DNA of 64,000 bases from Dendrobates tinctorius (lineage: Eukaryota). Below the pieces are notes generated by a model. It ran no database searches. It saw nothing but the letters and a program-made list of their open reading frames with translations, and was not told where the DNA came from. Below, one piece after another: positions 8,131 to 56,900 of this stretch. Both the position numbers and the translations under genes were made by a program. The first letter of the stretch is position 1. Each line of letters starts with the position of its first letter. The stretch spans positions 21,452,001 through 21,516,000 of the forward strand of contig NW_027361696.1 in the NCBI RefSeq assembly GCF_039654945.1, written 5' to 3'.

Positions 8131-9174
8131 CTAGACTTGGGGTACTGCCGCCTGCAGAACCAGTCTACCCAGGCTCGCATCCGCTGAGGACTGGGTATGA
8201 ACACTGTAGTGTTTCCTAAACGTGTGTAGGCTAGTCCAAGTGGCCGCCTTACACACTTGTTGTGCCGAAGCCTGATGCCGAATGGCCCAGGAGGCCCCTA
8301 CTGCCCGTGTAGAGTGTGCCGCGATACCGGCCGGAAGAGGGGAACTGTTAAGTCGGTAGGCCTCATGTACGGTGGACTTGATCCACCTGGCAAGGGTAGC
8401 CTTGGAAGCCGGCAACCCCTTGCGACTACCTTCCGGAAGAATGAAGAGGGAATCAGATTTCCGGAAAGGTGCAGTCCTGGACACGTAAATCCGCAATGCT
8501 CTGACGAGGTCAAGCGTATGCAGAGCCTTCTCCACTCTATGAACCGGAACCGGGCAAAGGGAAGGCAGTGAAATCTCCTCATTAAGGTGAAAGTTGGACA
8601 CAACCTTCGGAAGGAAGGATGGTACCGTGCGGAGAACCACCTTGTCCTGGTGAAAGGCTAGGAAAGGCCGTCTGCAGGAAAGTGCTGACAATTCCGACAC
8701 TCTGCGTAACGAGGTGATCGCCACTAGAAAAACCACTTTCTGAGACAGAATGGAGAGTGGAACTCCTCTAAGAGGTTCGAAGGGTGGAGCTTGCAATGCT
8801 GTCAGGACCAGATTGAGGTCCCACGTATCCAGCGGACGTTTGTAGGGAGGAACCAATCGGGAAACTCCCTGGATGAAAGTCCTTACTTGCGGTTTAATAG
8901 CAATGCGCTTTTGAAAAAGGACTGAAAGCGCCGACACCTGACTCTTAAGCGAACTTAAGGATAGCTTGGCATCTAGTCCCGATTGAAGAAAACCTAGTAC
9001 CTTCTGGAGGGAATAAGGGAGTGGGACTTGTCCATGAGATTCGCACCAAGAAAAGAAAGCTCTCCAGGTACGATAATAGAGCTTGGCGGAGGCAGGCTTC
9101 CTTGCCCTGATCATAGTTGCAATGACTGCCGGTGAAAAACCTGCCTGGGTTAGAATCCAGGTTTGAAGGGCCAT
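8131..9174 (-). CDS. DIRS tyrosine recombinase (integrase)
   Basis: Catalytic R (TSLRRVSEL), H-x-x-R (AHSTR) and Y (FRKHY). The open frame extends to 9876, overlapping pol; the likely start is MALQTW at 9174. Confidence 0.9.
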   Translation of the reverse strand: MALQTWILTQAGFSPAVIATMIRARKPASAKLYYRTWRAFFSWCESHGQVPLPYSLQKVLGFLQSGLDAKLSLSSLKSQVSALSVLFQKRIAIKPQVRTFIQGVSRLVPPYKRPLDTWDLNLVLTALQAPPFEPLRGVPLSILSQKVVFLVAITSLRRVSELSALSCRRPFLAFHQDKVVLRTVPSFLPKVVSNFHLNEEISLPSLCPVPVHRVEKALHTLDLVRALRIYVSRTAPFRKSDSLFILPEGSRKGLPASKATLARWIKSTVHEAYRLNSSPLPAGIAAHSTRAVGASWAIRHQASAQQVCKAATWTSLHTFRKHYSVHTQSSADASLGRLVLQAAVPQV

Positions 9175-10943
9175 GCCGTCAAATTGAGAGCCCCTGAATT
9201 CTGGTGGAAGAACGGACCTTGAGACAGAAGGTCGTGACGGTCGGGTAGACGCCAGGGGGCGTCTGCCGTAAGTTGGACGATGTCGGCGTACCATGTACGT
9301 CTGGGCCAGTCTGGCGCGATGAGGATGGTCGGAAATCCCTCTTGCTTGATCTTCCTCACGACCCTGGCGATTAGGGGGAGGGGTGGAAAAATGTACAGGA
9401 GTCGGAACTGGGACCAGTCCTGGACCAGGGCATCCGCTCCGAGCGACCGCGGGTCGTGTGTCCTGGCCATGAAATTGGGGACCTTGGTATTGAGATGGGA
9501 TGCCATTAGGTCCACCTCCGGGGTTCCCCAGCATTGACAGATCTGGTAAAAAATCTCGGGATGGAGAGACCACTCCCCCGAGTCCATTCCTTGCCTGCTG
9601 AGGAAGTCGGCTTCCCAGTTTTCTACACCCGGAATGTGTACCGCAGAAAGTACCGACCTCGTGTCTTCCGCCCAGCGGAGGATATGAGCCACTTCTCTCA
9701 TCGCCTGGGCGCTGCGGGTCCCGCCTTGGTGGTTCACGTATGCCACAGCCGTGGCATTGTCCGACTGTATCCGTATGTGCGAGGCTGCAAGCAAGTGATG
9801 AAAGGCTCTCAGTGCCAAGAGGATGGCCCTGATTTCCAGAACATTGATGGGCAATGTCACTTCCCTCGGTGACCACTTGCCCTGTGATGTAGGTGCACCG
9901 CCCCCCAGCCTGTCAGGCTTGCATCGGTAGTCAGGATCTTCCATTGTCCTGAGAGGAATGGCTTCCCTCGTGTAAGCGAGGTTGGTTTGAGCCACCAATG
10001 CAGGGACCTCCTGGTTGATGACGTCAACCTGAACTCCCTGTCGAGGGAGAAGGGTTTCCTGTCCCAAGATCCGAGTATGGCTAGTTGAAGGACCCTGAGG
10101 TGAAACTGGGCAAATGGCACTGCCTCTATTGCTGCTGCCATCCTGCCGAGGACTCTCATGGCAAACCGGAGAGATCGAGGAGGACTGCGAAGGAGTGTGC
10201 GAACTCCCAGACGGATGGCCAGTGTCTTGTCCTTGGGAAGGAGCACCAGGCCCCTGGCGGTGTCGAATACCATTCCCAGGAATGTTAGAGTCCGAGTTGG
10301 GATAGTCGACGATTTCTGTAGGTTGACTAGCCATCCCAGGCGACTCAGAGTGTCTAGTGTGATTGAGACACTGACCTCGCAGTCTTTGAAAGTGGGAGAC
10401 TTGATGAGGAGGTCGTCCAGGTACGGGACGACTAGGATGCCTCTTGAGTGCAGGACGTCCATGGTGGCCGCCATGACTTTGGTGAACGTTCTTGGAGCCG
10501 TGGCGAGTCCGAACGGAAGGGCGACACTGGTAGTGGTTTTGGTTGACCGCGAACCTGAGAAACCTCTGGTGGGCGGGAGCAATTGGTATGTGGAGATACG
10601 CATCCTGTATGTCTATGGAGGCGAGGTATTCTCCCTGGTCCATGGATGCAATGATGGACCGGAGGGACTCCATGCGGAAATGACGGACCCGTACGTAATT
10701 GTTGAGCTGTTTTAGGTCCAGTATGGGTCGGACGCCGCCTCCTTTCTTGGGGACTACGAACAAATTTGAGTAGAATCCTCGGAATCTCACGTTCGCGGGA
10801 ACCGGCACCACAACTCCTGATTGAAGGAGAGAGGAAACCGCTTGGTGGAAAGCACGAGCCTTTTCTGGTGGTGTTGGAGGAATAGAAAGGAAGAACCGGT
10901 TCGGTGGAACGGAAGTGAACTCTATCTTGTATCCGGAAGACAC
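9150..10943 (-). pseudogene. DIRS pol: reverse transcriptase - RNase H - DNA N6-adenine methyltransferase-like domain, with two compensating frameshifts
   Basis: RPILDLK...SIDIQDAYLHIPI in frame 9150-10943; LPFGL/YLDD/TTDAS in frame 9857-10603; then back to INVLE, SDNATAVAY, VDLMAS, YIFPP, LIAPDWP. Confidence 0.88.
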
Positions 10944-11043
10944 TATTTCCCTGACCCACCTGTCTTCTGTAATAGGCAGCCAGACTTGCTGAAAGAGTAA
11001 AAGTCGGCCGCCTACTGGTGGGGTGTCTTCCGGAGGTCTCGAG

Positions 11044-12587
11044 TCATGATGAAGCGAAGTTCTGAGGTTTTTCTCCCTTGGGTTTCGCTTGGCCTGCTTT
11101 CGACTGCCAAGCCCTGTCCAGTCGCTGCTGCGTCCGTGGGTTGTCTCTGCGTGGAGAACGGTTGCGGTTTTGCACTGGGCGCGAAACGGACCAGCCCGAG
11201 GAATTCCGAAAGGATCGGAATCGCGTCTGGTTTCTTCGTTTAAACGTGCGTTTCGGTTTTAGTTGAGGGAGAGAGGTACTCTTACCCCCAGTGGCATTGG
11301 CTATCATGGTGTCCAACTTTTCGCCGAAAAGTCTTCCAGTAAAATACGGAAGTCGCGTGAGGGACTTCTTTGAGGCCGCATCCGCTTTCCATTCTCGCAG
11401 CCAGAGGATGCGTCGGATCGTGATGGCGTTTGATGCTATTCCCGCTACACCTCTGGCGGAATCCAGGGCTGCATGAGTCATGTAGTCTGCTACCACTGCT
11501 ATCTGGACCGCTTGGTCCGAGAGCTCAGGATTTGAAGCCTGAAGACCCTCCTGTAGTTTTTTGGCACAAGCCAGGATGGCCTTGGCTGCCCAAACTGAAG
11601 CAAACGCAGGGCCCAGAGAGGCGCCTGCCGCTTCGAAAATAGAACGAGCCATGCGTTCTACTTGCCGGTCTGCTGCGTCCCTGAGGGTTGAGCTATCCGG
11701 CAGAGAGAGTAAAGTCTGCACTGCTAGCCTAGAAACCGGAGGGTCCACTTCAGGTGGATCTGTCCATTGTTTGGTGTCTGTGGGAAGGGGTACTTCGCTT
11801 CCAAATATTTGCGACTAGCGAATTTTTTCTCAGGCTGCGCAAACTGTTTGGTATTTTCTCAAACTCATGGTGATTAGGGAAGACCTTAGGTGGTTTCTGA
11901 ACACTTTCGAAGCAAATCCTATGTTCTGGGACTTCCGGGGGCGACTCTGGAATTTTTAGCACCCGATGAATGGCAGAAATTATGTCCTCAACTAGCGCTG
12001 TATTGCTAGGGGGAGAAGGTACCACGGACCTGACCGTTTCGTTATCTGAGTCGGAGTCACAGATGCCCTCCGAATCCTGTGCCTCGCTAAGGTGATCCCT
12101 GGAGGGCGACCTGGGGCGGGGGATCCCTGTGGTAAATTGCACTGTCTGTGGCAGGGGACTGCCCAGGAGACCTGGAATGACGCTGTCTCTCCCTGGAGGG
12201 GGACGACCTTGTGCTATAGTGCGACTCAGGTGATTGAGACCTGTGGGTCCGCTTACGTCTGTGAGAGTCGTAAGCAGCATGTTCCTGAGACAAGCTGTCC
12301 GTTTGCTGTGTACCGTCCATAGCCGGGGCCCGACTCTTCAGAGCTTGCAGTAATGTAGCAGTTAGGTTGTCTATGGACTGTGACATAGACTGAGACATCC
12401 GAGTTGCCCATTCCGGCGTGGCCTGTGACACTGAAGCGTCAGTAGGGACTCCCTGGGGTTCTGACCCAGAGTTCTGGATGCAGTCCCGGCAGTGCGGATA
12501 CGTGCTGCCACTAGGGAGCGTGGCTTTGCAGGCTGTGCAGAATGCATAGAAACATTCCTGCCTGGTTCTCTTCCTTGAGCCCGGCAT
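11044..12587 (-). pseudogene. DIRS gag/ORF1 (frameshifted) with an N-terminal CxxC...CxxC motif
   Basis: ORFs 12087-12587 (CTAC...CRDC), 11750-12280 and 11044-11748 (RRILWLREW...GRLFGEKLD). Confidence 0.8.
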
Positions 12588-18462: not shown

Positions 18463-21400
18463 TTAGAAGCGGCCATGTCGGTGCCTCGGTGAGCGTGAGC
18501 GGCGGCGGCCACCAGCATCTCTGTTGTTGTGCCGAGGCCTGTCAGGGAAGCGCTTTGGCGAGTGATGTCTGGGCGGAGATCCGGCCCTTGCCCTGTAATG
18601 GAAAACACAGAGACGTGAGGTCACAGAGAAAATTATTATACATTTATATAGATAATTATCACCCAAATCCCACAACCGGGGAGCGATCCTAACCATGGGT
18701 CCATGCACAGAGGTCCAAAAGACATCTGCCACCAATAATCCCCAGAGAACGTGCACACTAAGTCGTTGTGCATAGTTTTCAGAGGAGAAACGCCAAAGTT
18801 TTTGAGCAGGACTTGGAAGAGTTTTTACTGAAAAAAACCCCAAACCTCAGTGTACACGTAGCCTTAATGGGGTTGACCACAACAGCTCACTCACACATTG
18901 ACATTAACCCCTTCCCTATGACATATTACATCCTACATTCAGTCCCCACGGATGGCGCCATGTTATACACCTGACATCTGCATCGGCCAATCATTGCGTA
19001 GTTATCGCAGGCAGGGTCCTGGAGATCAGCAACTGATCACCTAAAAATGTGTTACCCCCAAATTAGTTTTCCAGCCACATTATGCAGTGATTAAAAGGAG
19101 TTCTCCGCTGCCACTCACCGACCTTGGGAGACAACAGGTGCCAGCCATGACGTGTGCACAGACGGAAGGTTTCATTGACCAGAATTGAACATCTGTGCAT
19201 GTCCAGGCAGGCAATTGTCAACGCACCATCATCAGTGACTATCACCTCCCAATGAAGAAGGGTAAGGAACCAGGGACCCCTTTAAGGCCAGGAAGGAAAA
19301 TGGTTGCGTCACATCAGCTCTCAGAAGTGCGACTTCGGGTTTTTCGGACTTTCCCGCTACAATGTGTCCTCTTGGGGGGACCCCTCGCAGTCAGTGACAG
19401 TATAGAGAGGTGCATCTCGAAACATTAGAATATCAAAAAGTTTATTTCAGTTCTTTAATAAAAAAAGTGAAACATTATATAGAGTCATTACAGAGCGATT
19501 TCAAGTGTTTGTTTCTCTTAATGTTGATGATTATGGCTTACAGCCAATGAAAATCCAAAGGTCATTATCTCTGTAAATAATACTTTTATAACACCAGCTT
19601 GAGAAAATTATTTTAAAATCCGAAATGTTGGCCTATTTAAATGTATGTTCTGTAAATGCACTCAATATTTGGTCGGGGCTCCTTTGGCATCAATTACTGC
19701 ATTTAATGCGGTGTGGCATTAAATAGAGTCTCTATGGGGTTAAGGTTAGGTGAGTTTGCTGGCCAATCAAGCACAGTGATACTGTTGTTTGTAAACAAGG
19801 TATTGGTACTTTTTTCAAGCTGGTGTTATAAAGTATTCTAATTTACTGAGATAATGACTTTTGCATTTTCATTGGCTGTAAGCCATAATCATCATTAACA
19901 GAAATAAACAATTGAAACAGATCACTGTTTGTAATGACTGTATAATATATGAGTTTCACTTTTTGTATTGAAGAACTGAAATAAATTAACTTTTTGATGA
20001 TATTCTAATTTTGTGAGATGCACCTGTAGGTGCTCCGCTCCCACCTATCCGCAGACATCCGGCACACAGGATGGAGCCTTGGACAGATGTGATTGGAGCC
20101 TTGTGTTCATCCAAGTACTCACTGTCGGTTACGGGCTCGACCGTACAGCTGCCTCCGGAGCGCGCTGGAGATAGGCTTCAAATGCATAAAGTTGCAAAAT
20201 CCGCCACGGTTACATTCACTGTTGGGGGAGAAGGACAATACGTTAAGTAAGGGTCAGAACGTCGGAGGTGAAGCAGACGACATGAGGAGTTGGCAACACT
20301 CACCCCATCTCATACTGCCGGCAGCAGGACTCCCTGAAGTCTGTGACGGGCGACAGCTCGGCGTGGATTGCCTGCCCGTTGAACCAGCGGTTGTTCAGTT
20401 CCACAAGGGCTCTTTCTGCGTCTTCCTCTCGACGAAACTGTAGGATAAAAGGCTAAAGAGTCAATGAAGGATCGAAGCAAGGAACCCTGGGAAATAGAAG
20501 AGTTGGACAAGCGTCACCTCCCTGCTGGCAGCTTAATATAGCCGTGCCTAATCCGGTTTATGGTAAATAGGATTGGACACCGAGATCTGGGGCAGACAGA
20601 CGAAGGAGACGCTGGACACAAACAGGTAATAAAGCCCCCGAGCACATATCGCTGATATATAGAACATATGATGCTGGTGGTGCGGGGGACACACTGTATA
20701 CGCTGATCGGGCGGGGGGGGCACACTAATTATACACCCTGACCAGGGGAGGCCATAGGCCTTCACCAACACTGACTCTAGCGCCCCGACCAGTCACCGAC
20801 ACTCAGACCCAACAGGGCCCCCAAATATTGCAAGAAGCTGGTTATTTCTGTCTACATGCCACCATACATATACATTTCTCTTATACCCACAGGCTCAATG
20901 ACACGGACAGAATATCAGTGCGGTGTTCACACTCCACCAATGCCCAAATTCGCAACCAGCATCACAATGGCCAGTGCGACCCCGCCAGCAGAGGGCTGCG
21001 ACACAGACAAAGGAGGCAGCCAGGAAGCCAACGGGTTGCGTTGTGGAACGGTGCAGCTCCCAAAGCCCAAGCAAGCGCTGGTTTTCCTTCCCCGACCCGC
21101 CACAGACACCGGTCGGTACCGAAGCATTCCCCAGAAGGTGAGAAGCCTAAAATATCACAAAGCGATCAACCTCAGAAATCCTACAAGATCGTAAATGTTA
21201 ATTGTCTCTTTCCCGCAGCCAGAATGTGTGGTGGCACCAACATGTGCAGCAAAGCCGACAGCACTGCCGGCTCAGGCGCACCCTCCGCTGCCAGTCCCGG
21301 ATATAATGCTGCGCAGCGCATACAAACGTCACATGAGCACCGCCGACGTGGGACATTCCAACCGGGCGCACCCGCAACAAAGCGTCTGCATCTCGGAGGA

Positions 21401-24400
21401 TCTTCTTAAGTTGCGCCGATCGTCCCTGAGAGAAGGTGGAGCAGCCAGCGCTCCCTGGTACTCTCAGCACGCCAGTGTGCCCGATATCACACAAGAACCT
21501 CGATACATTAACATGCCGCCACGATGGTTGTTTTCTGCCCCCCCGATGGGACCCGAGCGACCAGCTAAGCAACGCTGTAAGCTGATGGAAGCAGACCTCC
21601 ACCAAGGCAAGACATCCACCCGGCGGGAGCGACAGAGGTACGTGGCCAAAGACGGCAAGTGCCAGGTCAACTTAGGCCGCATTGAAGAAAAGGCTCGTTT
21701 CTTGTCGGACATTTTCACCACGATCGTGGACCTGAAGTACCGCTGGTTCCTGTTCGTCTTCATGATGTGTTATGTCATCACGTGGCTGCTCTTCGCCACC
21801 CTCTACTACCTGAACGCGCTCTTGCGCCAAGATTTGCTCCACCCGGATGACGAAGACTGGGCTCCTTGCTTCCAGAATGTGGACAGCTTCACAGCAGCGC
21901 TCCTCTTCTCTGTAGAGACCCAGCGCACCATCGGCTACGGCTCCCGCATGGTGACCACAAACTGCCAGGAAGGAGTGTATCTCATAATGGCCCAGTCTAT
22001 CGTGGGCTCCATGATCGACGCCCTCATGGTGGGTTGCATGTTCGTCAAGATCTCGCGACCTAAGAAACGAGCGCAGACGCTGATCTTCAGCCAGAACTGC
22101 GTGGTCTGCCCACGAGATGAAAAGCTTTGCCTCATGTTCCGCATCGGCGACCTCCGGGACAGCCACATGGTGGATGCCAAAATAAGGGCCAAGCTCATCA
22201 AGTCACGGCAGACATACGAAGGGGAATTCCTTCCCCTGGAGCAGTCAGAGATCAACCTCGGCTACGACACCGGAGAAGACCGACTGTTCCTGGTGGAGCC
22301 ACAGGTCATCTGCCACCTAATCGACCACCACAGCCCCTTCTGGGAGATGGGGCCGCAGCAGCTGCTTCAGGAGCAGTTTGAGATCATCGTCATATTGGAG
22401 GGGATCGTGGAAGCCACAGGCAAGTAGACAACTCCCTCTTGTACCCCCCAATACTTCCCTGCCCTCCAGGGTCTATGCATTATTTATAGAGATGCCCCCA
22501 ACAACCAGCTTAGTCTCCATACTGGACAACAACTCAAATTTTAACACTCTCACTAGATCAGAATCATAACCCCCATTCTTTATACTGCAGGCAAGTTTAT
22601 ATTAACAGGTTATTATGGGTGTTATTCATGTGGACATAATCCTAAAAGATACCACCAACTAAGGTTTAAAGGGGTTGTCCAGGGCAACCATATTGAGGAA
22701 ACATCCTCAGGATAAGTCGTCAATATCAGACGGGTGAGGGTCCGATGGTTTGCACACTGTTTTCTCAACTGCCATTGTGGCAATGGGCAATACGCAGAGT
22801 AGTGCGAAATGGTGTTTTTTCAGTATCATGGGACCATAACAGGGGATCGGTGGGAGCGTCTGGTGCCCGATCCCTACTGATCTGATGTGGATGACCCATC
22901 AAAATAACAGAGAGAGAAATAGAATCTGGCACTCAGCTTATATGCAGAAAACTTTTTAATGCAGTCCAGAACAATAAACGTTTCAGTCATCACTTAACCT
23001 TCATCGGTAAACCGACTGCTTCTAAATGAGGTTAGAGTGTTAATGCCTCAACTGTAATGCAGAAGATGAGTCAAGGTCAGGTATGTATTGATATGCAGAC
23101 AATGTTCTGAGAGGCATGAAAAAAATAATCTTGACCTGTGGGGCATGTAAAACTAGACCACTGTATTGTTTGGTTTACGTCCTATTCGGGTTATATGGTA
23201 GTGCGCACAACTAGAAATGGGTGGATGACTAAATGGTCATTGGCTGTGTGCCTGCATCCAACGCGGTGTCCACAGCTCGTCGACAATACAGAACATTGTC
23301 TGCCTATCAATACATACCTGACCTTGACTCATCTTCTGCACTACAGTTGAGGCATTAACACTAACATCATTTAGAAGCAGTCAGTTTACCGATGAAGGTT
23401 AAGTGATGACTGAAACGTTTATTGTTCTGGACTGCATTAAAAAGTTTTCTGCATATAAGTTGAGTGCCAGATTCTATTTCTCTATCATATTGGCTTAGGA
23501 ACCTATCTGTGCACAATTGTAGCTGTGCCACGATATGCTTTCTGCCATCAAAATAACAGGACATCAATATCATCCCTTTTAAGTGATCCCAATGAGATCA
23601 CCATTGAGATCGCTGGGGGTTAGTTCAGGGGTACCAGTATTGTAGTTGTACGTTGTTTGGACCTCACATTTCACACAAATCCCTCTCCCTACCCATCGCA
23701 GGAATGACTTGTCAGGCGAAAAGCTCCTACTTGGAAAATGAGATCATCTGGGGCCATCGCTTCGAGCCCTGCATGACCCTGGAGAAGGGGGCCTTCCGGG
23801 TGGACTACAAGCGCTTCCACAAGACGTTCGAGGTTCAGCTTCCTCGCTGCAGCGCTAAGGAGATGGAGGAGACGAAGGAGTTGGAGGGCTCGGAGTTCAA
23901 CTTCTACTGGGAGAACGGAGACTTCCTAACCGGACGCAGACACATGATGACAGACAGGGGCGACGATGAGGATGAGCGCAGCGGAAGACTCATCGGAAAC
24001 ATCACCGAAGAGCACAGCTCCAAGTTCAACGGCAGCGACTACAACCTGAGAGTCACCCCTCCAGTGATGGATGCTTGGCATCAGTAATTGCATAGGGTGT
24101 AATGAGCGCAGTTCCACTATAGACCAGGCTGCATTATGTAGATTGTGAGCAACAGAGGAGGAAGACACCACCGCGGTCTTGGGATATACATGGACTGATT
24201 AGCATCAAAAGGAAAAAAATAAAGAAAATATTTAATTAACTCTTCATTTCTCGCAGGAGCGCAGTGTAGATCCCGTCATGTCACCTGGTATCCCGACCTC
24301 AACATTTGTGCAGCTGAATCTGACGGCGGTGAATGCCACAGTGCTCCCTAAGTCCATTTCTGATGGGTGTATTAGGGCGGCACCATATGCATGCCTAGTC

Positions 24401-27400
24401 TTCCCAAGCAGCTGCGAGACGTTACCTTGACGTAGACGTTTCCCACTAGGTGATCGCCGAGGTTGTCACAGATATTCATCTCCTCGATCTCTCCGTATTT
24501 CTGCTCCACTTCAGTGAACACTTCCTGAGAGAGTGAAGAAATAATCAGACATGGTCAAGAAGCTGCACCTCCCCCTACTTGTCCTAATGGTCGCTGACCA
24601 GACATGCTGGAAGTAGTAGTGTCACCAGCCTTAGATTACATGCACACACACAAAAAGGCTTTTTCAGGCCGTTCTACTGTGTAACCCGCCTGAAAAAGCG
24701 CATTAAAAAAAAAAAGTGCTAAAAAGAATGGACATGTGCATTGCGACGCAAGAACGACCCGCTGATCATATGTCCAGGCTTCAAATGACTAAGATATCGG
24801 ACTGATGGCCAGGCGGCTTCAGACCTCAATAGTTTATAGATTAAAAAACCCAAAACAATGAAAAGTTGTTGGCGAGTCCACAGGAGACTCTCTCAGGCAT
24901 GCAAAACACAAGCCGCCGAGACACCATCACGTTTCTCAACGCAAGCAATGACTAGCCAGGTCTTTCCCCGGGAAGGAACAACCACGGGAAGGGCAGTCTC
25001 CAATGAAGGAAACCACTTATGCCGAAACATGGTATCCATCCACAGACAGCTGTTTCGGGGTATTGCCCCTCATCAGTGTGGAGTAGGAAACTGGCTAGTA
25101 GGAGCAATGCCTAGTAAAAAACTGAAAAATAAGGATGAATGAACTCATGGAGATCAACATCCAACACTGCGGAGACACCATCAATACCTTTTACTAGGCA
25201 TTGCTCCTACTAGCCAGTTTCCTACTCCACACTGATGAAGGGCAATACCCCGAAACAGCTGTCTGTGGATGGATACCATGTTTTGGCATAGGTGGTTTCC
25301 TTCATTGGAGACTGCCCTTCCTGTGGTTGTTCCTTCCCGGGGAAAGACCTGGCTAGTCATTGCTTGCGTTGAGAAACATGTGATGGTGTCTCCGCGGCTT
25401 GTGTTTTGCATGTTTTTGCATATTTCCCATGAGGGATGGGGGCATTGCTCTAGAATCACTGCGTTGAGAAACATGTGATGGTGTCTACGCAGTGTTGGAT
25501 GTTGATCTCCATGAGTTCATTCATCCTCATTTTTCTCAGGTAAAGTATTAAGAAGGTACCACTCACCTCAAAGAAGTCATCGTAATGTTCCTGCACCTCC
25601 ACATCACTGACGAGCGCTGCGAAAGAAAGAAGAGACGTGAATCATTGCACACCAAAGGAGACACCCAGAGACTACAGAGCTGCGGATGACCATCACTGAG
25701 GATGCCACCACTGATCTATCCACAGGATAATTAATATTGGGAGACCCCTTTAAGTGTCAGGCCTGCAGAATATTAAATATATGACCCTCCGTTAGTGGGG
25801 TACATGCAACATACTATTCTGCTCGCCCCTCATGGTCGTGGCTGAAATTGCCCCTCTACGTCAGCATTATTAGAGCCCACGTGGTAGGTCCCAACCGCAT
25901 GGGTTGCTGAAAGTGGCAATTCTTGTGTCCAGAAGAGGTGGTAAGGCCCCTTTAAGAGCAGGTACATGAGTATTATGTTGGCGCACTTACAGTGGGAGCC
26001 ATTGGCGCTCTGCGCCGTGTTCTGCGGGTTCCGGTAAAGGTTCAAGAGGACGATCGTCTGAAAAAAACCAAAACTAAATCATCAGCTGAGTAGCTACAGT
26101 GTCTAAAATCACATCCTTATGCTGACGAGGGGTCAGAACTCAGAGACCTCATCTGCATGAACTACTTATTAAAGGGGGAAGTCTATACACACTATTGCTG
26201 GGGTCCTAAAATGAAGCAATCACTGCACTGTGTAAGCCGCCTGAGCCCCTCCATCACTGATCAGAGCTGACTGAGTCCTGGGATTGTTCTTCATTCTGAC
26301 TGACTCCATTGTTGGGGGGGGGGGTTGGAGGTTGTGTGTCAGCTCAAATGTAACAGGACGTTACCAAACAAAGACCCCAAAACTACCATGGATGCCATCC
26401 TGCTATATACAATCCTGACTAATACACTGCTATGTATGCATGAAAGTGATTACATGATCTTTTCCGCTACCCAAAAACACACTTCAAGATGCATAGAGCG
26501 ACCGCAGGTCGTTCGACCTGAACATCACAACCTCAAGAGGAGGCCTGGGGCTGATCTGTGCTCGTGTGGATGAGACTGACCTCAGAAAAGCAGAGATTTC
26601 AGAATTTTATTGTTTCTTTTTAAATATACTACAGAGACACCTACAGAAACCCATCACATACACAGCAGGCTGCTAAAATACACCACTCAAATTCAAGGGA
26701 CTGTCCAGGTTTGAGAGCAGGATCTGCAAACGCTGTCACGTGGCGGCACGTCTGCCATCATTACACCGGCAGTCACATGGCGGCACGTCTGCCATCATTA
26801 CACCGGCAGTCACATGGCGGCACGTCTGCCATCATTACACCGGCAGTCACGCGCTGACTGGATGCAATAAGTTTCTTTCCAATCCATTCTAGAGGGTGAA
26901 GCCCGATGAGACCTTCATCCAGTAAAGCATCGGACGCCATGATTATGACCCCATAATAGTCAGTAGGATTGATCAGGTACGTCTGTGATATCTGTTTCGT
27001 AGGAGAGAACAGAAAGCCCAATTCCCTGCCACAGACGTGACAGGAGCCTAAAGCCCTCATACACATTAGACTAACACATCGCAGACATTGGGGCCCAGAC
27101 GACAGTCTGATGTGGGTGAGGGACCACATGACAGTCTGATACGTGTGGGGGCCCACATGGTGATGTCGGGGAGAGAAGGATCAGATATGCCCCATCTCTG
27201 ACTGACGATCCTGTTGATCTCCAGAATACAAGAAATGTCTGTCACTGGCTCTTGATCAGAACACAGGAGCTGAGCGAACGATCGTCTGACTGCCATCTGC
27301 TGTGTATGGGGTCCGCAGGTCACTACCAGAACAAAGTGTGCGGCCCCCAGAGTCCTCACCTGGCTGAAGGTGGGCTTGTTGTGGAGGCGGGAGCAGCGGT

Positions 27401-28334
27401 CTCCATGGCGACAAGCTCCGATTTTGAAGTAAAAGGAACAGTTGACCCTGAAGAACAGACAAAGGGGAGACTGTTATAAAAAGGCCCAAATATCCAACTA
27501 ATCCATCAGTGGCCACAAGAGATACACGCTATATATGCTGAGTCTTCTCCAGGGCCCCGTGCCCTCAGTGGCACCTCTGCAGCCCACTCTCGCCCTTCTC
27601 TGGGGCCAAGAGTCATCAGTGGCCCCCCTATAGCCCATTATCACCCTCCTCCAGGCCCCCCCCCCCCCCCCGTGTCCTCAGTGGCCCCTCTGCAACCCAT
27701 TCTTGCTTCCTCCAGGACCCCGTGTCCCAAGTGTCCCCTCTGCAGCCCATTCTCGCCTTCCACCAGGGCCCCACGTCCTCAATGGCCCCTCTGCAGCCCA
27801 TTCACGCCCTCCGCCAGGGACCCACGTCCTCAATGGCCCCTCTGCAGCCCATTCTTGCCCTCCGCCGGGGCCTCACGTCATCATTGGCCCCTGTGCAGCC
27901 CATTCATGCCCTCCGCCGTGGAGCGTGTCATCAGTAGCCCCTCTGCAGCCTACTCTTGCCCTCCTCCGGGGCCCTGTTTCCTCAGTGGCCCCTGTGCAGC
28001 CCACTCTCACCCTCCTCTGAGGCCCCATCTCTTTAGTGGCCCCTGTATAGCTCAGTCTTGCCCTCCTCTGGGGCGCCGTGCCCTCAATGGCCACTGGGCA
28101 GCCCACACTTGCCCTCCTCTGGGGCCCTGTTTCCTCAGTGGTCCCTGTACAGCCCACTCTCACCCTCCTCTGAGGCCCCGTCTCCTCAGTCGTCCCTGTG
28201 CAGCTCACTCTTGCCCTCCTCTGGGGCCCCGTGCCCTCAATGGCCCCCTGTGCAGCCCACTCTCGCCCTCTTCTGGGGTCCCACGCTTACTTATCCTTCT
28301 CAGTCCCGAAAATCGAGGCTAAGTATTCCGCCAT
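18463..28334 (-). CDS. U2AF1L4: U2 snRNP auxiliary factor small subunit paralog U2AF26 (235 aa)
   Basis: Exons 28291-28334, 27360-27447, 25991-26057, 25567-25616, 24426-24524, 20304-20437, 20123-20218 and 18463-18592 are all GT-AG and phase-compatible (708 nt). [35 protein letters not shown]; [23 protein letters not shown] and terminal HGRF are U2AF26-type. Head-to-head with PSENEN. Confidence 0.93.
19407..20026. mobile_element. Internally deleted Tc1-type element (MITE) in U2AF1L4 intron 7
   Basis: Long inverted arms AGGTGCATCTC...GAGATGCACCTG|TA with only short internal remnants. Confidence 0.75.
20898..24087 (+). CDS. Kir3/GIRK-like inward rectifier potassium channel (~608 aa), nested antisense in U2AF1L4 intron 5
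   Basis: Exons 20898-21137, 21219-22419 and 23702-24087 (1827 nt, open). Motifs [49 protein letters not shown]|MTCQAKSSY, with the phase-1 intron at the Kir3-type position. AATAAA at 24218-24223. The first exon and start codon are less certain than the core. Confidence 0.9.
22913..23483. repeat. ~195-bp inverted repeat with ~180-bp spacer, Penelope-like
   Basis: Arms 22913-23109 and 23289-23483 are near-perfect reverse complements and contain a decayed CCGATGA...GAAAC hammerhead-like core. Confidence 0.75.
25039..25082 (-). ncRNA. Minimal type I hammerhead ribozyme (intact core)
   Basis: UCCACA-CUGAUGA-GGGG-caaua-CCCC-GAAAC-agcu-GUC^UGUGGA: 6-bp helix I, 4-bp helix II, palindromic helix III, GUC cleavage site. 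Confidence 0.8.
25226..25269 (+). ncRNA. Minimal type I hammerhead ribozyme, inverted copy with a helix II mismatch
   Basis: TCCACA-CTGATGA-AGGG-caata-CCCC-GAAAC-agct-GTC-TGTGGA; the first helix II pair is A-C. Confidence 0.6.
26735..26851. repeat. Short tandem repeat, ~37 bp x3
   Basis: GTCACATGGCGGCACGTCTGCCATCATTACACCGGCA repeated. Confidence 0.8.
27545..28282. repeat. ~50-bp C-rich minisatellite in U2AF1L4 intron 1
   Basis: Recurring CCTCAGTGGCCCCTCTGCAGCCCACTCTTGCCCTCCTC units. Confidence 0.85.
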
Positions 28335-28760: not shown

Positions 28761-30832
28761 TGTCCACATTAGCTGTTGGCACCTTATGGGTCATTGTTGC
28801 CATGGTAACACTTGTCCCAAGAGCTGACAATTCACTGCTGCCTTCTATGGGGCAAAAAAGAGCTTCCAGCTAGAAATGTGCAGGTTTCTCCCCTTTTATT
28901 TTGTCCACAGCCCTCGTTGTACCTCTGCTTGCTGTCAGTGAATAGCAGCCTCCCGATTTGCGCTGGGCTGCGTCTGTCGAGGTGATGTGACCTCCCAGGG
29001 ACATGTTTTGTGCTTCCGTCCGTGACAACACCGAGCGCAGGGCACGGACGAGGCCGAATCTGTCCGTATCCAGGCCCCACTGTAACTGATTCACCGTCCC
29101 GGACCCCAGAATCCCCCACATCCTGCGCTCCAAGACTTGACACTCGATGAATGCGGCTCCACTGAATGGCGTGGGGATGTGCCATTCCCTATGCGGCCGC
29201 CTCAAACTCCTGTACTCTGAGGTTACAGGTGTTAAAATTGCAAAGTGCTTGGAAAAACTAGAAAGTTTCTCCATTTTCAAGAACAGGGAATTATAATTTA
29301 CTGTTTGTTGCCCAGGTTACCAGCCACTGCTGCGGTCTATCAGAAGAAGTCGGTTTCCTAGGTAATAGGGTAGAGCTTGCCAGCTGTTTGCTATAGAGCT
29401 TGAAAATACTGCTCTGAAGGTCCCTACCCATCTCACCAGCCTCTGCGCTCCTCCGATGCTGCCGAATATGATCAACAATGTTCGGACTAGGTCAACCGTG
29501 TTGCTGGCCACATACCAACAGTCATCAGAGACACAGTTCTCCAGCAAGCAGGAGGCAGGGGAGCAGTGCGCTTACAATCTGTTTATTACAGAGTTTATAA
29601 GCGCTGTTCTGAAGATCCGGCCGGCTTCTGGGAGCCTGCGTTCCTCCGATGCTACAGCAATGTCCCCACCAGTTCAACCAGTCAGTCATCAGAGGCACTG
29701 TTCTTCAGCAAGCAGGAGGCAGAGGAGCAGTGTGCTTACAATCTGTTTATTATAGTTTATAAGCGCTGTTCTGAAGATCCGGCCGGCTTCTGGGCCCCTG
29801 CTATCTCCTGATACTGCAGAGGTAAAGCTGCTGTTGCAGGTTCAGAGAGCGCACAGTTTGGAGCAATGGTGCAGTCATGGCAATAACTTGTCAGCAGGCC
29901 CCCTGGATTTGGCCCGTCATCGAGCCCCCAGAATACAGGCCATCAGTGGGAGCCCAGGGTGGATAATACGGCGAACACACTGAGCATTAGCTCTCATTAT
30001 GATGGATGCATTATAGCATCCCCTTTACAGCTGTACGGTTTCTGGGGAGAGTAGGGGGCTGAATATTGCTGGTAGTTCCCCTTTCAGGGCTGTAATGTCT
30101 GCCTGGTGCGCCTGTCGACGGGCTGCGTCCTGGGGGCCCACTGGTGGCATGGCTGCACCATTGGTCCAAACTGTGTTCATTTACTTTCCATTGCATTCTT
30201 CAATTTACTACAATTGTATCGTCTCCGGACTGATACACTTACAAATTCTGCACAGAAGAGATGATTGCAGATATTATTGTAACAAACCCTCAGCTGTTCA
30301 TACATCTCTGATCTTGATAGTGGAAATGAGTATCAGTAACAGAAGGGTTAATCCCGCAGGCGCTCCGAGATTCTCCGACAATGAACCGTATCTCAAACAT
30401 TACCAAATACGGCCCTGGGAAGAATGGGGGCCGAGCGCCAAATACCTCAGCGCACAGACACGGCCTCTTCCTCATCCACTCTGCGGTAAATCATTACCGG
30501 GCCTTTCGTATATGGGTGGTCTCAGATGCTTTTAACCCCTTGTCTCCCAGCTCCATTATTGCTGGCGACGCTGAGGAATATTCAGATCCATTTCTCGGAC
30601 ATGAACTTCTGGCTGTCAGTCTTCAGTGCAGTTCTAGATTTCTGTTTATGAACCAGGAGGCTCAGGATGAGCAGTTTGTACCGAATCCTTGGGAATCATG
30701 GATTTGTGGGAGGCCCAGTAAAAATAGAATAAAAAAAAAAATATATATATATATGTGCCCATGTTCTCATTTTTCCCTTTAGAGGCAACATCCTGACCAA
30801 ACGTGTGAAGATCCGATCTCTCTGACACCACA

Positions 30833-32052
30833 ATGAACCTGGAGCGCGTCCCCAACGAGGAGAAGCTGCAGCTGTGCCGAAAGTATTACCTGGGTGAGAT
30901 TGAAGCTGCACAATACACAAGTCTATATATTTCTCTGGTGGCCTTTGGTTTTCTGTCCAGTCCCCGGCGACCGGAGGTTGAGCGTCCAGTCCCCGGCGGC
31001 CGGAGGGTGAGCGTCCAATCCCCGGCGGCCGGAGGGTGGGCGTCCAATCCCCGGCGGCCGGAGGGTGGGCGCCCAATCCCCGGCGGGTGGGCGCCCAATC
31101 CCCGGCGGCCGGAGGGTGGGCGCCCAATCCCCGGCGGCCGGAGGGTGGGCGCCCAATCCCCGGCGGCCGGAGGGTGGGCGCCCAATCCCCGGCGGCCGGA
31201 GGGTGGGCGCCCAATCCCCGGCGGCCGGAGGGTGGGCGCCCAATCCCCGGCGGCCGGAGGGTGGGCGCCCAATCCCCGGCGGCCGGAGGGTGGGCGCCCA
31301 ATCCCCGGCGGCCGGAGGGTGAGCGCCCAATCCCCGGCGGCCGGAGGGTGAGCGCCCAATCCCCGGCGGCCGGAGGTTGAGCGTTCAGTTCTTGGTACTC
31401 TTTGCCCTGGAACCTAGTGTCAGGTAGTATAATTTTTTTTGTCGGATGGTCTGTTCTCTACTTCCTCTTCTCGGCACTATCACATGCCTCCAGCACTGAC
31501 GGGCGCTATTAACCCTTTCACCTTGTGTTTTTACAGGGGGGTTTGCTCTGCTGCCGTTCCTGTGGCTCGTTAACGTCACGTGGTTCTTTAAGGAAGCGTT
31601 CTTCAAGCCGGCGTACACAGAGCAGCCGCAGATACAGAGCTGTGAGTGTCGGGGTGTGACTATAAGGGGGGCTTTTTTTTTAGTAACACTATTTGCTGGA
31701 GGATCATTATTCCTCCTCCAGAAGTTGTCATCTCACTTTTCCATGGGCCATGAGCGGCAAATCCTCTGATGAATCCAGTAACAGTAAGGATTCGGGGAAT
31801 GATTAGGTAGATGCACCGTCCAGGAACTTGGGGGGCTGATGTACACCCCTGCGGGAGTTTAGTGTTGGCTATACTGGTGGTCTCCCCACTTATTCTCTGT
31901 TCACCCCTGCAGATGTGAAGCGGTCGGCCTTTGGCCTCTTTGTGTGGGTGGTCATCCTCACCACGTGGATCAGCATCTACCAGACACATCGGGCCAGCTG
32001 GGGTGCCACCGGTGACTACCTCTCCTTCACTATACCCCTGGGCATTCCCTGA
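30833..32052 (+). CDS. PSENEN: Gamma-secretase subunit PEN-2 (101 aa)
   Basis: Exons 30833-30893, 31537-31641 and 31913-32052 (306 nt). [33 protein letters not shown]...[19 protein letters not shown] at 32190-32195. Confidence 0.97.
30955..31385. repeat. 29-bp GC-rich VNTR (~14-15 copies) in a PSENEN intron
   Basis: CCCCGGCGGCCGGAGGGTGGGCGCCCAAT units, mostly identical. Confidence 0.95.
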
Positions 32053-38921: not shown

Positions 38922-51798
<12,877 letters not shown>

Positions 51799-53915: not shown

Positions 53916-56900
53916 ATGGAGAGCAGGTACACTGCGTCCCCGGATCAGCCCTCCCACACCTGCTGCTCATTAATGACACTCTGCCACAATGCTGCTCACT
54001 GTCAGGGGACCCCCATCTCGCCTCAATAGCTGGGGAGCTGCAGTACCATGTTTCCCTCTAGGGGGCGCTGGGGATATTACTTCCCTATGGATGCATAACC
54101 CCGGCTCCCGGTCACACACGTCTCAGAGCAGAGCGCCTCCCACTGGTGCTCATGTTCCGGTTCCGTGTGATCGTGCACTTGCCTTTTTCATCTCTTCTTT
54201 TGTCCGTGTACCTGAGACTGGAAGCCGATCCGCAGCCTTAATAATGAATGAGCCCCGGGCGGCTGTCACCGATACTGCATTTTCCAGGCTGCAAGTTTTA
54301 TCCATCGCCTCTTTGTACTGATATAATATAAAAAGCTATAATGATGGCGTGTGATATACAGTGACATGTAAAAGTCTGTGCACCCCTGGTCACAATTCCT
54401 GTTATTGTGACCAGTGAAACAAGTTGAAGATGAAATGATCTAAAAGGCCTAAAGTTACAGATGACACATTTCCTTAGTATTTTAGGCCCCATAAAAATAA
54501 TTTCATCTTTTACATTTTAAAAATTACAAAAAGGAAAATGTACCAATTCAAAATGTTGTGCACCCTGCATGGTCAGTACCTAGTAGCACCCCTTTTTGAA
54601 AGTATTATAGCTTGTAAATGCTTTTTGTAGCCAGACAAGAGTCTTTCAATTCTTGTTTGAGGGACTTTCCTCTGTTCTTCCTTGGAGAATTACTCCAGTT
54701 CTGGGAGATTCCTGGGCCGTCTTGCATCCTCTGAAAATCTGCGGAGAGACCTGAAAATAGCAATGATGATCGGATCAGGGGACTGTGAGCGCAATTATAA
54801 AACCTTCAGCTTCCGCCTTTTGAGGCCGCCTATTGTGGATTGTGACGTGCATTTAGGATCATTATCCATTTGTAGAAGCCATCCTCTTCCGCTCCTCACC
54901 TTCAGCTTCTTTACAGATGTGTTATGTTTGCATCAAGAATTTGTTGAAATATTATTGAATCCATTCTTCCCTCTACCCATGAAATGTTCCCCGTGTCATT
55001 GACTGCAACACAATCCCAAAGTATGATTGATCCTCCCCCATGCTTAATGGTTGGCGTTATGTTCTTTTCCTGAAATTCTGTGCCCTATTTCTCCACACAT
55101 ATCTGTGATCATTGTGGCCACAGAGATCTATTTTACCCTCATAGGTCCACAAGACTTATTTCCAATATGCATCAGTGTTATTTAGATGTTCTTTTGCATA
55201 CTTCTGACACTGAATTTTATAGTGAGGAAACAGGAGAGGTTTTCTTCTGATGACTCTTCGATGAAGGCTATATTTGTGCAGGGAAGAAACAAAAACAAAA
55301 AAAAGTGCACTCTGTAGTGCCAAACCAGGTCAATATGAAATATAAATAGCTATATGGCTTCTGGATACCAGGAAAAAGCTGAGGCGCTTAGCATATAATT
55401 TGGCTAATTCATGCATGCCCAGCAACCAACGACTAGGCGTTTTTTTTTGTTTGTTTTTGTTTTTATTGTATGTGGAGGTAGCTGCTCCTAGAATGCACCT
55501 GTTCACATTGGCTTGGAAGTGCCAGTCACTCTTTCGTAATATATTTGTTCTACTGTTCGGAAACCCCTGCACAATGTACCACAACTCCAGTCTGATAAAT
55601 CTTTCTGAAGGTCTTGTGCAGTCAAGCGGGTGTTCTGATTTGCCTTTTTACCAATCCTAAGAGTAGCTCTCCCTGAAATTCTGTTTGGTCTTCCAGACCT
55701 TATCTTGACCTTCACTGTTCCTGGTAACGACCATTTCTTAATTACATTTTGAACGGAGGAAAGGGCAACTTGAAAACGCTTTGCCATCTCCTTTTAGCCT
55801 TCTCCTGCTTTGTGGTCTCCACCGTTTTCGGAGTGTTCGACAGCGGCTTAGAAGAACCCGTGGCTGCTGGCTTTTAGCACAAGGTTAGAGGAGGCTGGGT
55901 ATTTATAAAGCTGGGCAATTTGTATCACCTTGCCTTTCAGAACGATGATTGTTAACGAACCATAACCTTAACAGGCAACTTGAGGTCTGAAACCTTGGTC
56001 AAAGTTATCTGAGCACACAAATCTCCAAGGTGCACAAACTTTAGCATCGGACCATTTTCCTTTTTACTCTTCGCCACGACAGCACCCACTGGAGGTATCG
56101 GATCCGCCCATTTGGAACAGGAAACCCTACAGGAAAGATAAAAGGGCGGTCCGCCTTTCCTCCTCAGCTTTGGTTTCCTGTTCCAAATGGAGCAGGATCC
56201 TGCAGGATCTTACCTGGGCCATGCATCCGCCTGTGCGGTCTCCTCGGGAACGGCAGGGGCTGCGGTCCGGAAGCAGCGTCGGGGGAGATTCCGTTTGACG
56301 GCTCCCCCCTCGTCTGGTGGCATAACGGTGATGTCCGGGGAGGGCCGCCCGGTCTTACCAGGGAGCGGGCCGGTCCGGCATCCGGAGGCAGAACTGCCCG
56401 CAGGAGCGAGGCAGCAGAAACTAGATCCAGACCGTCTCAGCCATCCGACCCGGTATTAAGCTTCACTGGGTGAGTGTGCAAAGTATATACTCTACCTATT
56501 AAGCTAACCTCCTCCCCTCCCCCCCCCCCCTCTTTACCTTTGACCTCCCACTTCAGTCAAAGAAAAAAGAAAAAACTAAACATAAAGAATGCGCATTATG
56601 TTCAGAGCCTCTCCCTGACTCCTACCCCAAAAAACTCTGCAAACAATGCATGAAAGAGACCAGGCAGGGGTCGACGATATCTTCTAAAGATATCCGAGCC
56701 ATAATTAGGGAGGAAATACAAGCCATCAACCGCGCCAGCACTCCCTCAGAGTCCAGTCATAAGAAACAGGTCATTGTTAGTTCAGAGTCAGAGGAAGAAC
56801 AGGAGTTAAATTCAGGCTCCGCATTCACGTCCTCATCGTCATCCTCGGAGATGGAAGGACGCGCATGTTTTCCACTGGACAGCGTAGATAACCTAGTAAA

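Follow-up and report, generated by a model that had tools for sequence, protein, structure and literature searches.

An intact gene, very probably orthologous to a conserved non-mammalian Kir3-type subunit, with its coding sequence nested antisense in an intron of a U2AF1-type gene of Dendrobates tinctorius

What is a potassium channel reading frame doing inside an intron of a splicing factor gene, on the opposite strand, to which branch of the channel family does it belong, and does its position have any meaning for either gene? Inhibitory signalling in the heart and the brain depends centrally on GIRK channels, and the textbook accounts of them have been built on four mammalian subunits. The locus that raises these questions lies in the window, that is, the whole stretch of 64,000 nt of D. 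tinctorius DNA that was analysed, and the answer favored here is that the gene is very probably an intact ortholog of a conserved non-mammalian subunit of Kir3 type, belonging to paralog A of a lineage called here clade X, with its coding sequence nested antisense in the host intron.

The channel gene is read on the forward strand, and its three coding exons (20898-21137, 21219-22419 and 23702-24087) join in frame opposite the host, as the first-pass annotation had claimed, into an open sequence of 1827 nt that encodes 608 aa and ends in a TAA codon at 24085-24087. The first exon (80 codons, in frame with the second) begins MTRTEYQ, a start common to the frog and salamander orthologs, and forms the first portion of a long N-terminal extension in which Pfam recognizes no domain; its protein is conserved in X. 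laevis (56% over 81 aa, E 2e-18) and also in Nanorana. Intron 1 (21138-21218, 81 nt) is of the GT-AG type (CAGAAG/GTGAGA ... CCCGCAG/CCAGAA), and the junction that it leaves in the protein, ...PQK/PEC..., agrees with the orthologs. The second exon completes the N-terminal extension and goes on to encode the two transmembrane helices, the TIGYG pore and the greater part of the cytoplasmic domain, and the third the end of IRK_C, an acidic C-terminal tail and the stop codon. Intron 2 (22420-23701, 1282 nt), which had been taken at first for a GT-AG intron, is in fact GC-AG (donor CAG/GCAAGT, acceptor ...CATCGCAG/GA), and the second intron of X. laevis uses the same GC donor. A foldback inverted repeat, with arms at 22910-23109 and 23289-23486, is also found within intron 2. 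Between the stop codon, some 130 nt back, and the host donor, about 200 nt further on, an AATAAA read from the sequence (24218-24223, forward strand) is a candidate poly(A) signal.

The family to which the protein belongs is Kir/IRK: its TIGYG selectivity filter begins at residue 317, and Pfam finds IRK in exon 2 (1.4e-55) and IRK_C in exon 2 (5.2e-46, profile positions 1-114) and exon 3 (1.3e-19, positions 115-173), the latter profile being divided exactly at the exon 2/3 junction, between positions 114 and 115. Among solved structures the best match is Kir3.2, with 366 bits vs. 297 for Kir2.1 and 251 for Kir6.2. A phase-1 intron that interrupts the Gly of ..VEATG/M.. marks a site exclusive to GIRK genes (PMC1999503), and intron 2 of the window gene falls in this Gly codon and in this phase (..EATG/M..), with exon 2 ending in ...ACA G and exon 3 beginning with GA ATG; phase and position are the same in X. 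laevis, Nanorana, turtle and shark, and in Sebastes on the donor side only. Also exclusive to GIRKs are the KSRQ block and the Leu of LxxG, which in human GIRK4 is L339 and is involved in Gβγ activation (PMC1999503); a sequence test finds IKSRQT and MTLEKG in the window protein, both conserved throughout clade X, vs. VVFEKS in Kir2.3. To these are added the Asp of GDLRDSH, the PIP2 motif KISRPKKRA, and an N-terminal extension of about 215 aa that is rich in conserved short motifs. Judging from these residues, the channel would probably be an inward rectifier that depends on PIP2 and, most likely, is gated by Gβγ; strong rectification is to be expected because there is an Asp at the M2 controller site, and the extension of about 215 aa would probably be regulatory. 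In the literature searched, neither electrophysiology nor a measurement of G-protein gating was found for any member of clade X.

With regard to the branch, the protein is 68-90% identical to members of clade X vs. 59-62% to canonical GIRK2/4. Clade X obtained a support of 100 in a quick tree, and in a more careful tree, rooted on Kir2.3/Kir2.4-like sequences, the amphioxus GIRK-like sequence diverges first, and then the vertebrate Kir3 including clade X, with supports of 99/98 for vertebrate Kir3, 100/99 for clade X and 100/99 for clade A. In these trees, composed without Kir6, Kir1, Kir4, Kir5 or Kir7 sequences and without a GIRK5 sequence, the window gene belongs neither to the GIRK1 nor to the GIRK2/3/4 clade, and clade X is the sister of GIRK1 plus GIRK2/3/4; a search for representatives, in which clades A and B merge into one 50% cluster, was used for outgroups only. 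On that placement, and on its neighbours, which are PSENEN and the U2AF1-type gene and not KCNJ1, KCNJ10 or KCNJ15, a 1:1 orthology with KCNJ3, KCNJ5, KCNJ6 or KCNJ9 is rejected, and the first-pass proposal of an extra, non-mammalian Kir3 paralog is upheld, as is the kinship that it had supposed with the extra fish GIRK-like genes, since the members of clade X come from lamprey, shark, teleost and coelacanth, as well as from amphibians and sauropsids, birds included. No mammalian member was found among the sampled hits. Clade X is a third ancient vertebrate lineage of Kir3, which mammals would have lost.

Within clade X the window gene belongs to clade A, which also includes a coelacanth sequence and whose locus is the KMT2B-U2AF1L4-PSENEN neighbourhood; clade B is found beside ZW10/USP28 and corresponds to the published KCNJ5/9L, its turtle and elephant shark genes adjoining ZW10. 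All the sampled sauropsid sequences are in B and none in A. The possibility that the window gene is itself KCNJ5/9L was considered and rejected on its placement in clade A (100/99). The literature on kcnj19 and kcnj21 yielded incidental mentions only, and no link to clade X was found there.

The host is a gene of U2AF1 type on the reverse strand. Its exons on either side of the nesting intron, recognized by their translation, are located at 24426-24526 (upstream, ending ...GNVYVK) and at 20304-20437 (downstream, from FRREEDAE... to CCRQYEMG), and in RNA contigs of three runs (X1, X2 and X3) 20437 is spliced directly to 24426, with exactly 3988 nt missing between them; the joint 20218/20304, which leads to the next exon (20122-20218, with the second zinc finger, identified by translation and covered by RNA contig pieces), is present in the same three runs. 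A motif scan and translation situate the 5′ exons of the host in 27354-28310, the first of them starting at 28310 and another being near 27440. Head-to-head with the host are the coding exons of PSENEN (PEN-2) on the forward strand (30827-32051), matched by the PEN-2 ORFs of X. laevis with 79-96% identity. The gene order with PSENEN is that of Phyllobates; KMT2B and PSENEN are neighbours of the orthologs in X. laevis and Nanorana, and PSENEN of that in Phyllobates, and there is a likely equivalent of the channel locus in a teleost. The PSENEN neighbourhood first described is thereby recovered as a KMT2B/PSENEN locus similar to human 19q13.12, and the earlier claim that the whole channel unit fits within the intron holds for the coding sequence and the AATAAA, which lie inside this RNA-confirmed intron, and for these two only; the channel promoter would presumably lie inside it as well.

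The first-pass annotation had counted against its own proposal both a 1:1 mammalian orthology and a nesting already annotated, and of these only the second is found: annotations of Phyllobates terribilis, Bombina bombina and Lissotriton helveticus place the whole channel gene inside the host gene. Neither the channel gene nor its nesting is a new discovery, both being annotated in related amphibians, and the literature on U2AF1L4 and nested genes contained no description of this nesting that could be found. The picture is different in other species. X. laevis has kept the channel gene, which is not nested because the host has been reduced to a single decayed relic exon without its zinc-finger cysteines, and no host exons were found near the channel gene in Nanorana or in Sebastes.

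The transcription of the two genes was followed in four RNA runs, in the form of Logan contigs, which have no strand information. The spliced channel junctions 21137/21219 and 22419/23702, which the first-pass annotation had pointed to as the mark of expression, appear in none of the four, and the channel's exons and introns alike are covered at a low, even depth, the pattern that host pre-mRNA or DNA would give. In these libraries the host transcript is abundant and its splicing correct, and channel mRNA was not detected.

These observations bear directly on whether the nesting has been maintained by selection, in such a way that antisense transcription of the channel would, as in the coupling suggested by the first-pass annotation, interfere with the transcription of U2AF1L4 or with the splicing of its neighbouring exons. 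The geometry would be suitable: a distance of 461 nt separates the ATG at 20898 from the host acceptor (20437), the poly(A) signal is some 200 nt away from the host donor (24426), and salamander, Bombina and dendrobatids all retain the nested arrangement. However, simple inheritance already predicts that conservation, the host is well spliced in libraries without detectable channel mRNA, and the retention of the channel gene in X. laevis beside a mere relic, and in Nanorana and Sebastes with no host exons nearby, argues against an obligatory coupling, which makes a regulatory role of the nesting very unlikely. The simplest reading is that the nesting is an accident of position passed on by descent, with no regulatory purpose.

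A second explanation would be a recent silencing, in which D. tinctorius has kept the frame open but lost the expression or function of the gene. The lack of spliced channel reads in the four runs would fit this, and also the loss of a conserved stop codon: nearly all the aligned orthologs terminate at ...SDYNL or at most two residues away, and at the ancestral stop position (24049-24051, forward strand) the window has AGA, a species-specific stop loss that adds 12 codons; position 24049 is T (TGA) in the contigs of two related organisms, B and C, and the contigs of organism A are as in the window. Unique changes in the N-terminal extension are about twice as many as in Phyllobates (23 vs. 11), with an excess at conserved motifs such as DLPKYRR, which has become DLLKLRR. 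In the channel core, however, the count is 4 vs. 5 in Phyllobates, with no acceleration of the rate, and 608 of the 608 codons are open over three exons with good splice sites. Moreover, the indels of exon 3 in the RNA contigs (polymorphic or from related species) measure 6 and 18 nt, multiples of three that preserve the frame, whereas just past the stop codon five of the six listed are not; and a channel of this type is expected to be tissue-restricted, the four runs being of unspecified tissue. Purifying selection is evident over a longer term: orthologs in more than 20 amphibians, frogs and salamanders, are 84-96% identical and mostly of about 600-615 aa, those of dendrobatid frogs being the closest, and dN/dS relative to Nanorana is 0.087 overall, 0.040 in the channel core and 0.166 in the N-terminal region, values that are approximate because dS is saturated at the distances of Nanorana and Xenopus, and undefined for the latter. 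The dN/dS near 1 that had been foreseen as fatal to the proposal is therefore not observed, a pseudogene is rejected on the intact frame and the low dN/dS, and recent silencing is very improbable. The channel gene is intact, strongly constrained and real.

That a canonical GIRK was recently duplicated or retrocopied into the intron, as a lineage-specific insertion, is hardly credible, even if nested genes often originate by insertion (a view cited in PMC8016131), and is rejected on conserved introns and synteny: the two introns at conserved positions mean that it is not a retrocopy, the orthologs of Xenopus, Nanorana and Phyllobates occupy the same neighbourhood, as a likely teleost equivalent does, the identity to canonical GIRK2/4 is only 59-62%, and clade A includes the coelacanth sequence.

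If the gene is accepted as an ortholog of clade X paralog A, the locus illustrates clearly a third Kir3 lineage older than the split between lampreys and jawed vertebrates, which fish, amphibians and sauropsids retain under strong constraint, and whose subunits could contribute, in frog, fish and bird, to GIRK currents now ascribed to GIRK1, 2 and 4. The nesting in itself is ordinary, and its value lies in a guest gene that has outlasted its host in Xenopus and Nanorana. A bolder proposal would see in clade X a functionally distinct class of G-protein-gated channels, characterized by the strong rectification of the M2 Asp, an Arg adjacent to the filter and the motif-rich extension of 215 aa, with the amphibian A copy co-regulated with U2AF1L4 by antisense transcription; if true, channel expression would feed back on a splicing factor, but this combination is judged to have very little likelihood.

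Extra GIRK genes absent from humans have been reported in Xenopus (PMC8016131); their products measure about 600 aa and, as with the window gene, they count as non-mammalian Kir3 genes with putative G-protein gating. The X. laevis protein P0020 (606 aa, 88% core identity), encoded between KMT2B and PSENEN and belonging to clade A, is likened to them by description rather than by accession, since that work lists the genes without synteny, nesting or function. Lovell et al. (2013, PMC3711925) described KCNJ5/9L in birds, lizard and frog, with USP28 and UBE4A on its flanks, as a gene that mammals have lost. It is of the same clade X and has in common with the window gene a long, motif-bearing N-terminal extension, the ETQ/SQ-R-TIGYG pore helix and the Asp of the M2 site; it differs in being the sister paralog B, located beside ZW10 and not U2AF1L4/PSENEN, with about 76-78% identity to the window gene.

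Xenopus GIRK5/XIR (Kir3.5) is likewise an amphibian GIRK whose N terminus is extended, and a nested gene is found at its locus too, Kcnj1 lying inside Kcnj5; GIRK5 is, however, the ortholog of human KCNJ5, beside Kcnj1 (PMC8016131), and identity with it is rejected for that reason, the window gene having other neighbours and not belonging to the GIRK2/3/4 clade. Finally, GIRK2/Kir3.2 (KCNJ6; PDB 3SYA), the closest protein of solved structure, shares with the window protein the PIP2 motif, the Asp of the Na+ site, the Leu of the βL/βM loop, the phase-1 intron, and a Ser at the position of GIRK4 S143 and GIRK1 F137. The two are not orthologous, their core identity being about 60%, and the window protein is distinguished from GIRK2 by an Asp in place of Asn at the M2 rectification site, by ETQR in place of ETET in the pore helix, and by about 215 additional N-terminal residues.

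The channel coding sequence runs on the + strand in three pieces (20898-21137, 21219-22419 and 23702-24087) that join in frame to give 1827 nt, that is, 608 codons closed by a TAA stop, and it lies, as the first-pass annotation had proposed, antisense within a 3988-nt intron of a U2AF1-type gene, followed by the AATAAA claimed as a candidate poly(A) signal at 24218 (+). U2AF1-type peptides are encoded on the - strand on both sides, the upstream host exon ending at the donor 24426 and the downstream one beginning at the acceptor 20437, and translation reveals further host exons (-), one at 20122-20218 and others near 27440 and 28310. Experimental confirmation of this intron comes from RNA contigs: in three runs, and at high depth, 20437 is spliced straight to 24426, and the 3988 nt left out have GT..AG ends on the - strand; across the RNA runs the host gene is abundantly and correctly spliced. 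PSENEN is found head-to-head with the host gene, at 30.8-32.1 kb of the window.

The earlier reading of channel intron 2 had to be corrected, as it is a GC-AG intron (donor CAG|GCAAGT), with GC also in X. laevis and GT in Nanorana, Sebastes and a turtle. Within it lies a long inverted repeat (22910-23109 and 23289-23486; arms of 129 and 74 nt, 96-97% complementary) with the look of a foldback or MITE-type insertion; in this region one contig of organism A, from the sequencing runs, shows 33 mismatches, and 134 nt of 22451-22586 are missing from a contig of the related organism C, an indel between close species. Elsewhere in the window there are DIRS-like retroelements (8131-12587 and 56650-60686), whose ORFs match a reverse transcriptase, a Dam-like methyltransferase, a tyrosine recombinase (a weak Phage_integrase match) and a LAP2alpha-like gag region, and, at 43394-45652, two Tc1/mariner-type transposase ORFs on opposite strands (HTH_Tnp_Tc3_2, DDE_3, Sleeping Beauty HTH), beside assembly gaps seen as N runs at 44230-44371, 45968-46140, 47067-47281 and 48865-49008.

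The protein carries, in Pfam, an IRK domain (1.4e-55) plus IRK_C, the latter divided exactly where exons 2 and 3 meet (exon 2 covers profile positions 1-114, exon 3 covers 115-173); exon 1 has no Pfam domain, yet its protein sequence is kept in X. laevis and Nanorana. Its top solved-structure match is Kir3.2 (366 bits), then Kir2.1 (297) and Kir6.2 (251), and in a length-restricted search its identity falls in a clear step, from 68-90% with fish, shark, lamprey, coelacanth, amphibian and sauropsid proteins to 59-62% with genuine GIRK2 and GIRK4. The gene has the signatures that Tanaka-Kunishima et al. (PMC1999503) defined as GIRK-exclusive, namely a phase-1 intron interrupting the Gly codon of ..EATG|M.., the KSRQ block and the Leu of LxxG, together with the Asp of GDLRDSH and the PIP2 motif.

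Two trees, one of 113 rows and a careful one of 51 rows that takes Kir2.3/Kir2.4-like sequences as its root, both built without Kir1, Kir4, Kir5, Kir6 and Kir7, are concordant. In the rooted tree an amphioxus GIRK-like protein branches first, and vertebrate Kir3 forms a single clade (99/98) that splits into GIRK1 + GIRK2/3/4 (91/83) and a third lineage, clade X (100/99), which holds a lamprey sequence and no mammal among those sampled. The window protein falls outside the GIRK1 and GIRK2/3/4 clades, in clade A of this lineage (100/99), whose other members are a single coelacanth sequence, one group of teleosts and the amphibian "3-like" proteins, and this bears out the proposal of an extra non-mammalian Kir3 paralog with fish relatives; clade B comprises a second amphibian protein set and all sampled sauropsids, and the protein matches included no amniote member of clade A. 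An identification with GIRK5 was rejected, since GIRK5/XIR has been shown to be the KCNJ5 ortholog (PMC8016131), in a paper that also reports extra Xenopus GIRK genes lacking in humans. Clade X is marked by an Arg directly ahead of the filter (ET/SQ-R-TIGYG), by an Asp as the rectification controller in M2 (SMIDAL), a residue shared with GIRK1 and Kir2 but not with GIRK2/3/4, which have Asn, and by an N-terminal extension some 215 residues long, in which A and B share LAYLPRPPTDTSRY.SFPQKPE, DLPKYRRxS and SVPNI. At 21900-22010, the pore helix ETQ-R-TIGYG and the M2 Asp are not specific to this frog, since clade X members as far apart as lamprey and birds keep them.

The reading frame is intact, and the orthologs, mostly of about 600-615 aa, share the MTRTEYQ start and the exon 1/2 junction (...PQK|PEC...), with an identity to the window protein of 87-96% in Anura (core) and 84-85% in Caudata. 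Against Nanorana, dN/dS (Nei-Gojobori) comes to 0.087 for the whole sequence, with 0.040 for the channel core and 0.166 for the first 215 residues, values that are rough because dS, at about 1.5, is saturated. Unique changes in the core number 4 against 5 in Phyllobates, without acceleration; for the N-terminal extension the counts are 23 and 11, about a twofold excess. Nearly all aligned orthologs end at ...SDYNL or within two residues of it; the codon at 24049 is AGA in the window species, which lengthens the frame by 12 codons, and with T it becomes TGA in contigs of two related organisms, so that an ancestral stop has been lost in the window species. In the RNA contigs the exon 3 indels (6 and 18 nt) are in frame, and, of the six listed for the 3' region, five have lengths not divisible by three. 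Exon 3 varies in length, in frame, within its acidic tail (23964-23973), with an extra GATGAG in a run of the same organism and 18 nt extra in a related one, and three runs carry T>G at 23973.

The nesting is already annotated publicly, and in this the novelty of the earlier claim is reduced, although the gene is no 1:1 ortholog of a mammalian KCNJ: in Phyllobates terribilis (where PEN-2 adjoins the pair), Bombina bombina and the newt Lissotriton helveticus the channel lies inside an opposite-strand gene of 234-240 aa (zf-CCCH, RRM, zf-CCCH), and the arrangement therefore goes back at least to the common ancestor of frogs and salamanders. In both X. laevis and Nanorana the channel gene stands between KMT2B and PSENEN, and a host gene is not called; at the X. 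laevis locus (L001:15852-15920, -), tblastn finds between the channel gene and PSENEN a lone decayed relic of host exon 2, FKTGAHEHRDRRSRLHPEPISSQ, whose zinc-finger cysteines are lost or replaced relative to the window exon, and at the Nanorana locus (L004) tblastn gave no host-gene match. The host appears to have been lost in Xenopus while its nested gene survived, and, with a relic only in one frog and nothing in the other, the channel gene has outlived its host at least twice. In the teleost Sebastes the A-type gene is flanked by a TNFR-domain gene and a BTB zinc-finger gene, possibly IGFLR1-like and ZBTB32-like respectively, and no U2AF1-type gene is called in the vicinity.

As to expression, the predicted junctions 21137/21219 and 22419/23702 did not appear, no spliced channel junction being found in four RNA runs; this is weak negative evidence, since the runs are only four and their tissues unstated. 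The contigs pass unspliced through both channel introns at low, flat depth (in the RNA data X15, a depth of about 10 across the channel gene compares with 7,000-36,000 for the host exons), and this signal looks like host pre-mRNA or DNA. The suggested coupling through transcriptional interference or splicing has no support beyond the geometry of the two genes, and the host-free genes of Xenopus, Nanorana and Sebastes show that the channel needs no host.

In summary, the finding is largely present in public annotation, where NCBI names the orthologs "GIRK3-like" or "GIRK4-like". The analysis adds that A and B together constitute a third Kir3 lineage, a deep one that has hallmarks of its own; that the window gene is paralog A, for which the matches included no amniote member; that the nesting is ancestral for amphibians, the host being lost later in some frogs; and the species-specific details of the GC-AG intron, the stop loss and the intron 2 foldback repeat. 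In human, KMT2B, U2AF1L4 and PSENEN are at 19q13.12 and ZW10 and USP28 at 11q23, and from these positions A and B may be ohnologs of the vertebrate genome duplications. Paralog B itself was described earlier (PMC3711925): the clade B genes of turtle and elephant shark adjoin ZW10, a linkage that fits the USP28-linked locus of the "KCNJ5/9L" of birds, lizard and frog, described as lost in mammals (Lovell et al., PMC3711925).
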